Source: Bugula neritina
Taxonomy: Eukaryota > Animalia > Bryozoa
NCBI GenBank assembly: GCA_964035545.1
Contig: OZ037770.1
Coordinates: 1,984,001-2,048,000 of the forward strand
Direction: 5' to 3'
DNA length: 64,000 bases
The notes beneath the pieces are model-generated. The model worked only from the letters and a program-made list of their open reading frames with translations, searched no databases and was not told the DNA's origin. Positions 18,238-50,983 of this stretch are shown here, piece after piece. Numbering within the stretch: the first letter of the stretch is position 1; each line of letters starts with the position of its first letter. The position numbers were made by a program, and so were the translations under genes.

Positions 18238-18432
18238 TCAGTTTTCTTCTGCGTTTTCCGTATTCAAGAGTAGGAGTGCTTCGTCAAGTTCATTGAGATA
18301 TTTTGCTGCTACGGGTGCATACCTGTTCCAAAAGCCTACATTATCATAGTCTCTTCTAAACTCTTGCTTTACCTCACCAACTCGATTAAGTATCCTCTGT
18401 TTTAATTTTAGCTGCTCATCTAGCTGCCTTCC
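18238..18432 (-). CDS. Terminal exon [64 protein letters not shown]
   Basis: Acceptor TATTTTAG, phase 0, TGA at 18238-18240, AATAAA (minus) at 18172-18177. Confidence 0.85.
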   Translation of the reverse strand, partial: GRQLDEQLKLKQRILNRVGEVKQEFRRDYDNVGFWNRYAPVAAKYLNELDEALLLLNTENAEEN

Positions 18433-48400: not shown

Positions 48401-50983
48401 CTGCTCATAGGGGGCACCATGTTTGAGTGTTTTAAATTACTCAGAACAGTCTGTTATGGTATATAGACACTATTTTGAAAATAGGCTCACAGAAGGACAA
48501 TTTGATATTTTCCAATACCAGGGGGGGCTCTGTATATATATACAAAAAACCCCCTATGGTATTATACAATATCAAATTAGGGAGTTGTCTTCCCAAAAAC
48601 TAATGTAAAGCTTTTTTCACTGTTGGAAACACTTAATTACATTGATAATAATATAATTTCAGTTGCTATAATTGTGCCAGGGGTTGAGGTAGAACTTGTA
48701 TAGAAATCTGGCCTGCATCTCCGTTAAAAAGTCATATTTGAGTTGTTGTGAGCTTATATATAGTATATCTGCCCCCTATGAGCCTATATATTTTATATAT
48801 GCCCCCTATGAGCTTATATATTCTATATCTGCCCTCTATGAGCTTATATATTCTATATCTGTCCCCTATGAGCTTATATATTCTATATCTGCCCCCTATG
48901 AGCCTATATATTCTATATCTGCCCCCTATGAGCTTATATATTCTATATCTGCCCCCTATGAACTTATATATTCAATATCTGCCCCCTATGAGCCTATATA
49001 TTCTATATCTGCCCCCTATGAGCCTATATATTCTATATCTGCCTCCTATGAGCCTATATATTCCATATCTGCCCCCTATGAACTTATATATATTTTATGT
49101 GCCCCCTTTCACTGTTGGAAACACTTAATTACAGTGATAATAATATAATTTCAGTTGCTATAATTGTGCCAGGGGTTGAGGTAGAACTTGTATAGAAATC
49201 TGGCCTGCATCTCCGTTAAAAACTTATATTTGAGTTGTTGTGAGCTTATATATTATATCTGCCCCCTATGAGCTTATATATTCTATATCTGCCCCCTATG
49301 AACCTATATATATATATATTATATCTGCCCCCTATGAACTTATATATATATATATATATTATATCTGCCCCCTATGAGCCTATATATTCTATATCTGTCC
49401 CCTATAAGCCTATATATTTTATATCTGCCCCCTATGAGCCTATATATTCTATATCTGCCCCCTATGAGCCTATGTATATCATATCTGCCCCCTATGAGCC
49501 TATATATTCTATATCTGCCCCCTATGAGCCTATATATAGTATATCTGCCCCCTATGAACTTATATATATATATTATTTCTGCCCCCTATGAACTTATATA
49601 TATATATTATATCTGCCCCCTATGAGCTTATATAATATATTATATCTGCCCCCTATGAGCCTATATATTTTATATCTGCCCCCTATGAACTTATATATAT
49701 ATATATATTATATCTGCCCCCTATAAGCCTATATATTTTATATCTGCCCCCTATGAGCCTATATATTCTATATCTGCCCCCTATGAACCTATATATATAT
49801 ATATATATTATACCTGCCCCCTATGAACTTATATATATATATATTATATCTGCCCCCTATGAGCTTATATAATATATTATATCTGCCCCCTATGAGCCTA
49901 TATATTCTATATCTGCCCCCTATAAGCCTATATATTTTATATCTGCCCCCTATGAGCCTATATATTTTATATCTGCCCCCTATGAGCCTATATATTCCAT
50001 ATCTGCCCCCTATGAACGTATATATATTTTATGTGCCATCTTTCACTGTTGGAAACACTTGATTACAGTGATAATAATATAATTTCAGTTGCTATAATTG
50101 TGCCAGGGCTTGAGGTAGAACTTGTATAGAAATCTGGCCTGCATCTCCGTTAAAAAATTATATTTGAGTTGTTGTGAGCTTATATATAGTATATCTGCCC
50201 CCTATGAACTTATATATATATTATTTCTGCCCCCTATGAACTTATATATATATATATTATATCTGCCCCCTATGAGCTTATATAATATATTATATCTGCC
50301 CCCTATGAGCCTATATATTTTATATCTGCCCCTATAAACTTATATATATATATATTATATCTGACCCCTATGAGCTTATATAATATATTATATCTGCCCC
50401 CTATGAGCCTATATATTCTATATCTGCCCCCTATAAGCCTATATATTTTATATCTGCCCCCTATGAGCTTATATATTCTATATCTGCCCCCTATGAACTT
50501 ATATAGTCTATATCTGCCCCCTATGAACTTATATATTCTATATCTGCCCCTATAATGAACTTATACATTCTATATCTGCCCCCTATGAACTTGTATATAT
50601 TTTATGTGCCATCTTTGAGCTCATATACTATTTATGTGCCGATATGAGCCTAGATATGTTATATGTGCCCCTTATGAGCTCATATATGCTGCATGTATAT
50701 GCGATCCCCATAAGCCTGTGTATACTATATCTGCCTCATATGAGTTGATGTATACTATGTGTGCCCTATATCAGCAAGCACAGTCCACAGTGTCTGATGT
50801 GCATCATAGTAGGTTTATTAATTTGCATATTTTTAATTTGATGTCTTTCTCTGCAATTATGACTTTCAGCTTTAGAAGTTTTTTTGTTATATGCAGCACG
50901 TTTTCAAATTAAATAATTATCAACCTAAGAAGATACATACCTTTTGCTGTCTCCAATTTGCTGCTCAAATTTTTATTTTGCTT
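18238..50983 (-). CDS. Multi-exon coiled-coil protein gene built from 42-nt phase-0 micro-exons (5' end unresolved)
   Basis: 20 GT-AG 42-nt exons, two 39-nt exons, 43- and 161-nt 5' exons and a 195-nt terminal exon; phases are compatible and hydrophobic residues tend to fall at positions 1/4/8/11. Confidence 0.85.
19129..19170 (-). CDS. 42-nt micro-exon [14 protein letters not shown]
   Basis: AG/GT bounded; paralog of 28507-28548. Confidence 0.8.
19463..19504 (-). CDS. 42-nt micro-exon [14 protein letters not shown]
   Basis: AG/GT bounded; paralog of 33840-33881. Confidence 0.8.
20586..22064 (+). pseudogene. gag: Disrupted gag (two CCHC knuckles) and aspartic protease
   Basis: [38 protein letters not shown]; frameshifts/stop between 20930 and 21144. 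Confidence 0.85.
22154..22312 (+). repeat. Seven hairpins CCAC-YYYG-GTGG at exact 24-nt period
   Basis: Cores at 22156, 22180, 22204, 22228, 22252, 22276, 22300. Confidence 0.85.
23041..23082 (-). CDS. 42-nt micro-exon [14 protein letters not shown]
   Basis: TTTTACAG acceptor, GTTAGT donor. Confidence 0.85.
23178..23219 (-). CDS. 42-nt micro-exon [14 protein letters not shown]
   Basis: TTTTTCAG acceptor, GTAAC donor. Confidence 0.8.
23707..23745 (-). CDS. 39-nt micro-exon [13 protein letters not shown]
   Basis: GTGAGT donor; paralog of 35573-35611; weak acceptor. Confidence 0.5.
24309..24350 (-). CDS. 42-nt micro-exon [14 protein letters not shown]
   Basis: TTTTTGTAG / GTGAGT; paralog of 36182-36223. 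Confidence 0.85.
24584..26335 (+). mobile_element. 5'-truncated, disrupted Penelope-like element (RT remnant plus GIY-YIG) in (TA)n
   Basis: [55 protein letters not shown]; near-identical to 45490-47265. Confidence 0.92.
26247..26297 (+). ncRNA. Minimal hammerhead ribozyme (family B)
   Basis: TATTGTGC CTGAGGA GTGCC GAAGA GGCAT GAAA CTATTA GTA GTGCAATA. Confidence 0.85.
26509..27264. mobile_element. Non-autonomous TIR DNA transposon (CAC- termini) inserted in (TA)n
   Basis: TIR CACAGGATAGTTAAGGG at 26509-26525 and 27248-27264; absent from the paralogous intron 36224-36520. Confidence 0.85.
27478..27519 (-). CDS. 42-nt micro-exon [14 protein letters not shown]
   Basis: TTTACAG / GTAAGT; paralog of 36521-36562. 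Confidence 0.87.
28507..28548 (-). CDS. 42-nt micro-exon [14 protein letters not shown]
   Basis: TTGTTACAG / GTAAGA. Confidence 0.8.
28622..33245 (-). mobile_element. Decayed Gypsy LTR retrotransposon related to the 1-6589 element
   Basis: Diverged LTRs ~28622-29072 and 32947-~33245; PPT region GCTTTCTGCTGGAGGGGGG like element 1; RT/RH remnants 31000-32050 ([18 protein letters not shown]); ORF3 remnant 29500-29909. Confidence 0.85.
33840..33881 (-). CDS. 42-nt micro-exon [14 protein letters not shown]
   Basis: TTTTGAAG / GTAAAT. Confidence 0.82.
35013..35054 (-). CDS. 42-nt micro-exon [14 protein letters not shown]
   Basis: TTTTAG / GTAAGT. Confidence 0.87.
35368..35409 (-). CDS. 42-nt micro-exon [14 protein letters not shown]
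   Basis: TTTTTAG / GTATGT. Confidence 0.85.
35573..35611 (-). CDS. 39-nt micro-exon [13 protein letters not shown]
   Basis: AACAG / GTGAGT; paralog of 23707-23745. Confidence 0.5.
36182..36223 (-). CDS. 42-nt micro-exon [14 protein letters not shown]
   Basis: TTTTTGTAG / GTGGGT. Confidence 0.83.
36521..36562 (-). CDS. 42-nt micro-exon [14 protein letters not shown]
   Basis: TTTACAG / GTAAGT. Confidence 0.87.
37128..37469. mobile_element. Probable old MITE/fold-back
   Basis: 15-bp perfect inverted repeat AGTTGTGGTCTCCCA (37128-37142) / TGGGAGACCACAACT (37455-37469); true ends unclear. Confidence 0.5.
37530..37571 (-). CDS. 42-nt micro-exon [14 protein letters not shown]
   Basis: TTTTGTAG / GTAAGT. 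Confidence 0.87.
38041..38082 (-). CDS. 42-nt micro-exon [14 protein letters not shown]
   Basis: TTTTAG / GTGAGT. Confidence 0.87.
38251..38292 (-). CDS. 42-nt micro-exon [14 protein letters not shown]
   Basis: TTTTAG / GTAAGA. Confidence 0.87.
38426..38467 (-). CDS. 42-nt micro-exon [14 protein letters not shown]
   Basis: TTTTAG / GTAAGT. Confidence 0.87.
38741..38782 (-). CDS. 42-nt micro-exon [14 protein letters not shown]
   Basis: ATTGTAG / GTAAAC. Confidence 0.83.
38973..39014 (-). CDS. 42-nt micro-exon [14 protein letters not shown]
   Basis: TTTTCAG / GTACAT. Confidence 0.83.
39196..39237 (-). CDS. Micro-exon [14 protein letters not shown] with mutated acceptor (41 nt if the shifted AG is used)
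   Basis: TTTACAA|GTC instead of TTTACAG|GTC; donor GTATGT. Confidence 0.55.
40943..41106. mobile_element. PIF/Harbinger-like MITE (164 bp)
   Basis: TIR CACTGCGTTTCCAT / ATGGAAACGCAGTG, 3-bp AAA on both sides. Confidence 0.7.
41997..42030 (-). CDS. 34-nt exon; remnant of the 42-nt unit [14 protein letters not shown] (41997-42038)
   Basis: TTTACAG acceptor lies 8 nt inside the 42-nt unit; donor GTACGT. Confidence 0.5.
42962..43014 (-). ncRNA. Minimal hammerhead ribozyme (family C)
   Basis: TCTAACAC CTGACGA GTGCAG TTTA CTGTAC GAAA CTATATA GTC GTGTGAGA. Confidence 0.87.
43437..43498 (+). ncRNA. Minimal hammerhead ribozyme (family A)
   Basis: Same sequence as 16772-16833. Confidence 0.87.
44251..44292 (-). 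CDS. 42-nt micro-exon [14 protein letters not shown]
   Basis: TTTTTCAG / GTAAGT. Confidence 0.87.
44583..44624 (-). CDS. 42-nt micro-exon [14 protein letters not shown]
   Basis: CTTGTAG / GTAAGT. Confidence 0.87.
44807..44857 (-). ncRNA. Minimal hammerhead ribozyme (family B, inverted end)
   Basis: Reverse complement of 47178-47228. Confidence 0.85.
47178..47228 (+). ncRNA. Minimal hammerhead ribozyme (family B)
   Basis: TATTGTGC CTGAGGA GTGCC GAAGA GGCAT GAAA CTATTA GTA GTACAATA. Confidence 0.87.
47621..47781 (-). CDS. 161-nt coiled-coil exon (A)[53 protein letters not shown]
   Basis: ATTTAG / GTTAAT; phase 1 to 0, fits the 43-nt upstream exon. Confidence 0.8.
48330..50770. repeat. 30-bp minisatellite with higher-order structure
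   Basis: GCCCCCTATGAGCCTATATATTCTATATCT arrays separated by a ~136-bp spacer at 48615, 49107 and 50041; inverted CATAGGGGGC units at 48340-48420. Confidence 0.92.
50941..50983 (-). CDS. 43-nt exon [14 protein letters not shown]
   Basis: TTTTTACCAG / GTATGT; phase 0 to 1. Confidence 0.7.

Follow-up and report, generated by a model that had tools for sequence, protein, structure and literature searches.

An array of 42-nucleotide exons in Bugula neritina

We analysed a stretch of 64,000 nucleotides (nt) from the bryozoan Bugula neritina (assembly GCA_964035545.1, contig OZ037770.1; C6:1984001-2048000), hereafter the window, whose minus strand carries the 3′ part of a gene that we call A. The gene is predicted to encode a GTPase head, located past the end of the window, followed by a coiled-coil rod built from many short exons of nearly uniform size. 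A preliminary description of this DNA had listed 20 stop-free exons of 42 nt in phase 0 with AG/GT ends, and a scan for the pattern AG-N42-GT found all of them on the minus strand, running from 44624 to 19129. All 20 are free of stops in frame 0, compared with 7 of 20 and 5 of 20 in the other two frames. Between 19 and 45 kb, a single filter returned 21 matches at 42 nt on the minus strand, as against 1-7 at other lengths and 5 on the plus strand at 42 nt; third-order Markov shuffles (n = 200) gave 3.4 ± 1.8 matches, with a maximum of 10. Stray 42-nt matches at 11885 and 15339 were dropped, as they lie past the stop codon. The features of gene A within the window are given below, with exon families denoted by lower-case letters and a neighbouring paralog, B, used for comparison.

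47793-64000, minus strand: window portion of an intron of 27.6 kb that separates exon 8 from the 172-nt exon
47621-47792, minus strand: 172-nt exon, phase 2 to 0, predicted to encode the end of the helical domain and the start of the coiled coil; placed by frame continuity and by an acceptor shared with paralog B and with a JGI contig from a different sample
44251-44624, minus strand: 42-nt exons a (44624-44583) and b (44292-44251), from the exon scan
41997-42030, minus strand: degenerate micro-exon c, shortened to 34 nt by an 8-nt deletion; paralog B has an intact copy, and the lesion is also present in contigs of run X1
39349-41969, no strand assigned: high-copy insertion of 2621 bp with similar inverted ends, between degenerate c and d; not at this place in paralog B
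39196-39237, minus strand: degenerate micro-exon d, 42 nt, acceptor changed from AG to AA; intact in paralog B, by paralog comparison
37530-39014, minus strand: six 42-nt exons, e-j, starting at 39014, 38782, 38467, 38292, 38082 and 37571
33840-36562, minus strand: block 1, with 42-nt exons k (36562), l (36223), m (35409), n (35054) and r (33881) and the 39-nt exon 35611-35573
28507-28548, minus strand: 42-nt exon s, end of block 1
19129-27519, minus strand: block 2, a duplicate of block 1, with 42-nt exons k (27519), l (24350), p (23219), q (23082), r (19504) and s (19170) and the 39-nt exon 23745-23707
18238-18432, minus strand: terminal coding exon, 64 amino acids (aa) and stop; predicted helix-loop-helix with a conserved GF..R.A motif and no CaaX box
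18172-18177, minus strand: AATAAA polyadenylation signal, about 60 nt past the stop

Two 39-nt exons, the terminal exon (18432-18238) and the AATAAA signal at 18177, all proposed previously, are likewise present, but two further exons of the preliminary description had to be abandoned or redrawn. The 43-nt exon at 50983-50941 is not supported: paralog B lacks it, the frame does not need it, and no counterpart was found between exons 8 and 9 in the JGI contig; the 161-nt exon is out of frame with exon 8, and the actual exon measures 172 nt (47792-47621).

The 14-residue units encoded by the 42-nt exons carry V, I, L, M or F in 75% of cases at position 1, 75% at position 4, 35% at position 8 and 30% at position 11. 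The pattern across columns is stronger than in 10,000 within-exon shuffles (p = 1e-4). Hydrophobicity along the units recurs most strongly every 3.5 residues, in agreement with the heptad register that had been suggested for them. Mean identity among the units is 15%. Taken together, the micro-exons (39-42 nt) make up about 37% of the coding sequence (CDS) and would encode a coiled coil of about 306 aa, for which a rise of 0.1485 nm per residue gives a length of about 45 nm. Each of the 39-nt exons (35611-35573 and 23745-23707) specifies 13 residues, a beta-like unit with proline that falls one residue below two heptads and could act as a hinge or beta-layer within the rod; these exons are less certain because one copy in paralog B is frameshifted. 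A 36-nt exon candidate (22680, 20069) was dropped, since it is duplicated in the long terminal repeats (LTRs) of an insertion. A faint resemblance at the DNA level (55% identity, family q) hints that the 42-nt unit might have been derived from the start of the terminal exon.

The rod is predicted to be joined to an atlastin-like GTPase head

To find the remainder of the gene we examined 200 kb of contig sequence beyond the window end, using extended coordinates in which window numbering is carried past 64000. The 5′ end of the gene lies 11-27 kb past the window end, with the P-loop and RD motif located 13-16 kb past it. Eight head exons at extended 79779-75409 (C6:2059409-2063779), on the minus strand, have canonical splice sites and matching phases, and together with the 172-nt exon, the micro-exons and the terminal exon they form a single open frame that encodes 809 aa when read from the second Met. 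An in-frame exon of 4 codons (C6:2075058-2075069), identical in paralog B, carries a Kozak-type ATG at 91069; it is probably the first coding exon, adding 9 residues, and we infer the start from it. The predicted full model thus spans about 818 aa and consists of a G domain, a helical middle region, the micro-exon coiled coil and a terminal helical hairpin. The spliced model was joined only for frame, hydropathy and the ratio of nonsynonymous to synonymous substitution rates (dN/dS); database searches and folding were done by single exon. The preliminary description had left the 5′ end unresolved and had not recognised the protein; the head lies outside the window, and the gene is no orphan, with its rod forming the C-terminal half of an atlastin/GBP-type GTPase.

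In the JGI contig from another sample, exons 6-9 fall within about 2 kb and the acceptor of the 172-nt exon is kept; the intron between exons 8 and 9 measures 27.6 kb in gene A but 3.1 kb in its paralog B, and in a JGI contig it is down to about 0.7 kb. In gene A this intron (window 47793 to extended 75408) holds a 30-bp tandem array at 48749-50687 and decayed retroelements.

Matches to the Pfam GBP profile (PF02263) fall on exons 1, 2 and 4 in profile order (positions 19-43, 44-67 and 146-177), each below the gathering score because each represents a single exon. The atlastin profile matches exons 1, 2, 4 and 5 at E-values of 1e-9 to 6e-5 in collinear positions, and exons 8-9 match profile positions 365-422 in the right order but weakly (E 0.03-0.06). 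Searched exon by exon, the best matches in the PDB are 9JJU (Xenopus RNF112, E 1e-6), ATL1 and ATL3, with no GBP among the matches listed; the closest full-length relatives are GB1/RHD3-type proteins of Macrostomum, and a GenBank Bugula neritina paralog matches the genome at 93% over a stretch that extends beyond an exon end. The G1 motif GAMRSGKS with its catalytic arginine, the switch-I threonine, G3 (DIQG) and G4 (RDF) are all present and in order, and judged by these motifs the head belongs to the atlastin/RNF112/GBP group of GTPases with G1-G4 intact. In RNF112 the G1 arginine is needed for hydrolysis (PMC12012479).

The protein is predicted to be cytosolic and soluble. Hydropathy indicated no transmembrane (TM) segment (maximum 19-residue Kyte-Doolittle score of 1.3 overall and 0.64 after residue 300) and, as the sole measure of a signal peptide, no hydrophobic N-terminal stretch. 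There is no CaaX box, the C-terminus being acidic and without Cys, and no RING domain was found in the model beginning at the inferred 4-codon start exon. The modelled protein thus has neither the two tandem TM segments and C-terminal tail of canonical atlastins, nor the N-terminal RING and C-terminal TM helix of RNF112/neurolastin, nor the CaaX box of vertebrate GBPs. Among GBPs, CaaX boxes are confined to GBP1, GBP2 and GBP5, and several others are without one. The terminal exon is predicted to fold as a helix (2-28), a loop and a second helix (34-63) at a pLDDT of 78; Foldseek returned no match to this hairpin, a homologue search with the exon, limited by its short length, was blank. Scans of metagenomes also gave no match.

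The rod grew by duplication and shrank by deletion

The P-loop exon has 17 matches genome-wide, with four close ones on C6. Paralog B lies on the same strand 80-108 kb away and has an open frame that comprises 51 of the 42-nt exons and, besides the one frameshifted copy, three intact exons of 39 nt; its micro-exon rod would be about 110 nm long, compared with about 45 nm in A, a difference of about 2.5-fold. Paralog C is compact (about 7 kb), and in its downstream portion, the part covered here, a long coil exon is followed by a single exon of 63 nt and then by the terminal exon; paralog D was considered as coordinates only.

We sorted the 71 exons of 42 nt in A and B into 19 families. The order in A is a b e f g h i j k l m n r s k l p q r s, and B contains repeats of the c-f, g-s, k-s and p-r blocks. 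Flanking intron DNA confirmed the block duplication, and comparison of the two genes showed that o-p-q is absent from block 1 of A and that exons c and d are lesioned there. Block duplication therefore lengthened the rod, and deletion or exon death shortened it. This bears out, at the level of DNA, the earlier suggestion of a modular coiled coil that varies by whole two-heptad exons: blocks have been duplicated, three exons are missing relative to B, two are dead, and the two genes carry 20 and 51 exons. Family k, the one family tested, was found only in A and B.

The lesions in c and d are not assembly errors, because contigs of run X1, which may be the source sample, match A at both sites without differences. 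A contig with neither the insertion nor the 8-nt deletion was considered as a second allele of A and rejected; it is paralog B, whose 24 mismatches and 8 gaps it shares. The 34-nt remnant of c and a 41-nt version of d (39196-39236, with an AAG acceptor) add up to 75 nt, in frame and stop-free; these remnants may reflect either compensation or skipping. In exon b of paralog B (extended 147454-147495) the donor is GC, compared with GT in A.

Toward the 3′ end, A and B share several kb of intron and exon sequence at 95-99% identity (17713-29289 compared with extended 98001-127782), whereas identity in the 5′ part of the rod is 81-87%; the higher 3′ identity suggests recent gene conversion or unequal crossing-over. 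A family member in another Bugula sample (JGI, L026:1529-1663) has an in-frame stop in exon 2, which is consistent with birth-and-death turnover.

Stops and splice-site losses are selected against

Minimum spanning trees of the exon families (71 copies) contain 217 substitutions, none of which creates a stop where 11-14 would be expected (P about 1e-5 to 4e-7). Of 208 sites in splice dinucleotides, one has changed (giving a GC donor), compared with 101 of 520 flank sites, and indels occur in 29 of 104 flank windows. As the exons had originally been chosen as stop-free, degenerate copies were also sought by their flanks, and only c and d were recovered. There is thus selection against stops and against splice-site loss in the rod, and the absence of stops in 217 substitutions places the translation of the rod under selection while its sequence drifts fast. 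Between A and B, dN/dS is 0.26 in the G domain, 0.56 in the helical region, 0.49 in the terminal exon and 0.69 in the micro-exons; among duplicate exons within A it is 1.8 (bootstrap p = 0.08). The absence of stops, the retained splice sites and the dN/dS of the head exclude a dead gene, though they would be compatible with neutral drift in length.

Comparison with known systems

In architecture, the closest counterparts of the predicted protein are the TM-less BmAtlastin-n of Bombyx and the GBPs. BmAtlastin-n, a cytosolic and antiviral protein of similar size (770 aa), likewise combines an atlastin-type G domain with a coiled coil and no TM segment (PMC4926086); it is not known to be built from micro-exons, and we liken the two by architecture. 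ATL1, ATL3 and Xenopus RNF112 (9JJU; PMC12012479) share the G1 GxxRxGKS arginine finger, the switch-I pattern W..G..T.GI.MW, the G3 DxxG and the G4 RD, with DTQG and RDW in place of the DIQG and RDF found here; unlike them, the Bugula protein has no TM hairpin and no RING was found, and a rod of 300-750 aa has been added. Vertebrate GBPs (hGBP1; PMC9005921, PMC11746146) resemble it in that they have clustered paralogs and a soluble G domain, a helical region that is only weakly matched in the Bugula protein, and a long helix at the C-terminus that is capped by a short one; they differ in that the Bugula protein lacks a CaaX box, has a head nearer to ATL/RNF112 in exon-wise PDB searches, and carries a far longer, exon-modular C-terminal helix.

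In exon design, the closest system is the chicken BG/butyrophilin tail, in which a coiled coil is likewise made from many exons of heptad-multiple length whose number varies by gene (PMC5938342). BG exons, however, are 21 nt long with a split first codon, so that a heptad spans two exons, and they belong to a receptor with an Ig-V domain and a TM segment (PMC5938342), whereas the exons of gene A are 42 nt long, in phase 0, start at heptad position a and are attached to a GTPase head with no TM segment. Since BG and this GTPase are unrelated proteins, the heptad-exon design would be convergent.

Schistosome micro-exon genes (MEGs), to which the locus had initially been compared, also have arrays of short symmetric exons and evolve fast; they are built from mixed exons of 6-36 bp that make up about 80% of the CDS, their products are secreted or held at the surface, and their splice variants have been shown (PMC5825161). 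Gene A has uniform 42-nt exons, about 37% of its CDS in micro-exons and a predicted cytosolic enzyme head, and the comparison is a poor fit because the protein is predicted to be cytosolic (no TM segment, no obvious signal peptide).

A literature search for a heptad-exon array on a dynamin-family GTPase returned no case; what appears new is that a known enzyme head and a known heptad-exon principle are combined in a form of which we found no report. The clearest precedent for heptad-multiple, length-variable exon arrays is provided by the chicken BG receptors. The gains and losses legible in the neighbouring paralogs of gene A offer a natural length series on the reach of the GBP/atlastin effector helix, and are relevant to the open question of GBP-type defence by invertebrate atlastin-like proteins (PMC9005921). 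Because gene finders are likely to miss micro-exons, similar arrays may hide in other genomes.

Possible function of the gene

Our preferred explanation, which we regard as moderately probable, is that gene A encodes a GBP-like cell-autonomous defence GTPase of a birth-and-death family, in which rod length varies by gene copy more than by splice isoform. GTP-driven dimerisation of the G domains, as in ATL, RNF112 and GBP1, would pair two rods as a parallel two-stranded coil, and the terminal hairpin would form the distal end contacting a membrane or partner. By the GCN4 rules, I/V at position a and L/M at position d fit a dimer. Because each exon has 14 codons, is in phase 0 and starts at a, exons can be gained or lost with frame and register kept, and unequal crossing-over, deletion or exon death would shift the reach in steps of about 2 nm. 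GBPs form outstretched dimers that coat membranes (PMC9005921, PMC11746146).

Several points weigh against this explanation. The immune role is suggested by analogy, and the splicing of the gene is predicted from genomic DNA; a search for RNA runs that contain the locus found none, and the single run that does contain it is of unspecified type. Every Pfam match of the head lies below the gathering score. Position 8 is often K, R or N and position 11 small, and the coil may consequently be weak; conservation at core positions exceeds that at surface positions only modestly (8.3 compared with 10.6 changes). Positive selection is not demonstrated, as dN/dS of the rod does not exceed 1 and the within-gene duplicates reach p = 0.08. 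The two lesioned exons could also disturb splicing in copy A.

One may postulate an alternative in which the protein is a non-immune long-range membrane tether or spacer, golgin-like, whose head dimerises and whose rod length sets the distance between organelles or membranes. Atlastin and RNF112 do remodel or tether membranes (PMC12012479), the head is nearer to ATL/RNF112 than to GBP in PDB searches, and rods of about 45 and 110 nm are within tether range; the lack of a TM or lipid anchor and the many family copies argue in the other direction, and a 2.5-fold change in length between young paralogs, with fast evolution of the rod, is ill-suited to a housekeeping role. We consider such a tether rather unlikely.

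Somatic diversification, in which MEG-like combinatorial exon skipping would yield many rod lengths and surfaces per gene, appears quite unlikely: duplication and deletion already account for the genomic pattern, and MEG products are secreted and their exons 6-36 bp long, unlike the predicted cytosolic protein here. It would nevertheless be in keeping with exons that are all symmetric and interchangeable in frame, with weak scores at several splice sites, with the apparent tolerance of dead exons, and with BG tails, which vary by alternative splicing, mainly through intron read-through (PMC5938342). An extension, which we hold to be comparably doubtful, is that this is an invertebrate family of GBP-like immune GTPases whose effector rod is a ruler adjustable both genetically and somatically. 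Two-heptad exons would then be duplicated from one gene copy to another and also skipped in mRNA, and the resulting rods, from tens to more than 100 nm, would match the coat thickness of different microbes or the reach to them, for example in the case of the bryozoan's bacterial symbiont. Very improbable, finally, is a nearly neutral accordion, in which any helical in-frame rod suffices and exon number drifts by unequal crossing-over in a locus rich in transposable elements, with no tuned function for length and with A perhaps decaying; it accords with a rod dN/dS of 0.69 that is not significantly below 1, with several exons conserved no better than their introns, and with the two lesioned exons, several transposable element insertions and the 27.6-kb intron of A, but sits poorly with 0 stops in 217 substitutions, kept splice sites and a head dN/dS of 0.26.

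Neighbouring elements in the window

On the plus strand, a Gypsy-type retrotransposon occupies 283-6012, with an open 1542-aa pol open reading frame (ORF) encoding protease, reverse transcriptase (RT), RNase H and integrase, followed by a 273-aa ORF that contains Cys and His residues and has no Pfam match. At 9770-10531 (plus strand) lies an ORF of 253 aa that includes a short stretch of coiled coil and has no match in Pfam. Between exons q and r, an LTR element at 19940-22758 has 208-nt LTRs that are 98.6% identical and a gag-protease ORF at 21144-22064; it is recent, because it is not at this place in paralog B. Two intronic element copies at 24584-26508 and 45491-47493 are 91% identical to each other and contain RT and GIY-YIG-like ORF pieces, and we take this element to be Penelope-like. 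More copies of it occur in paralog B and at 15.5-16.9 kb.

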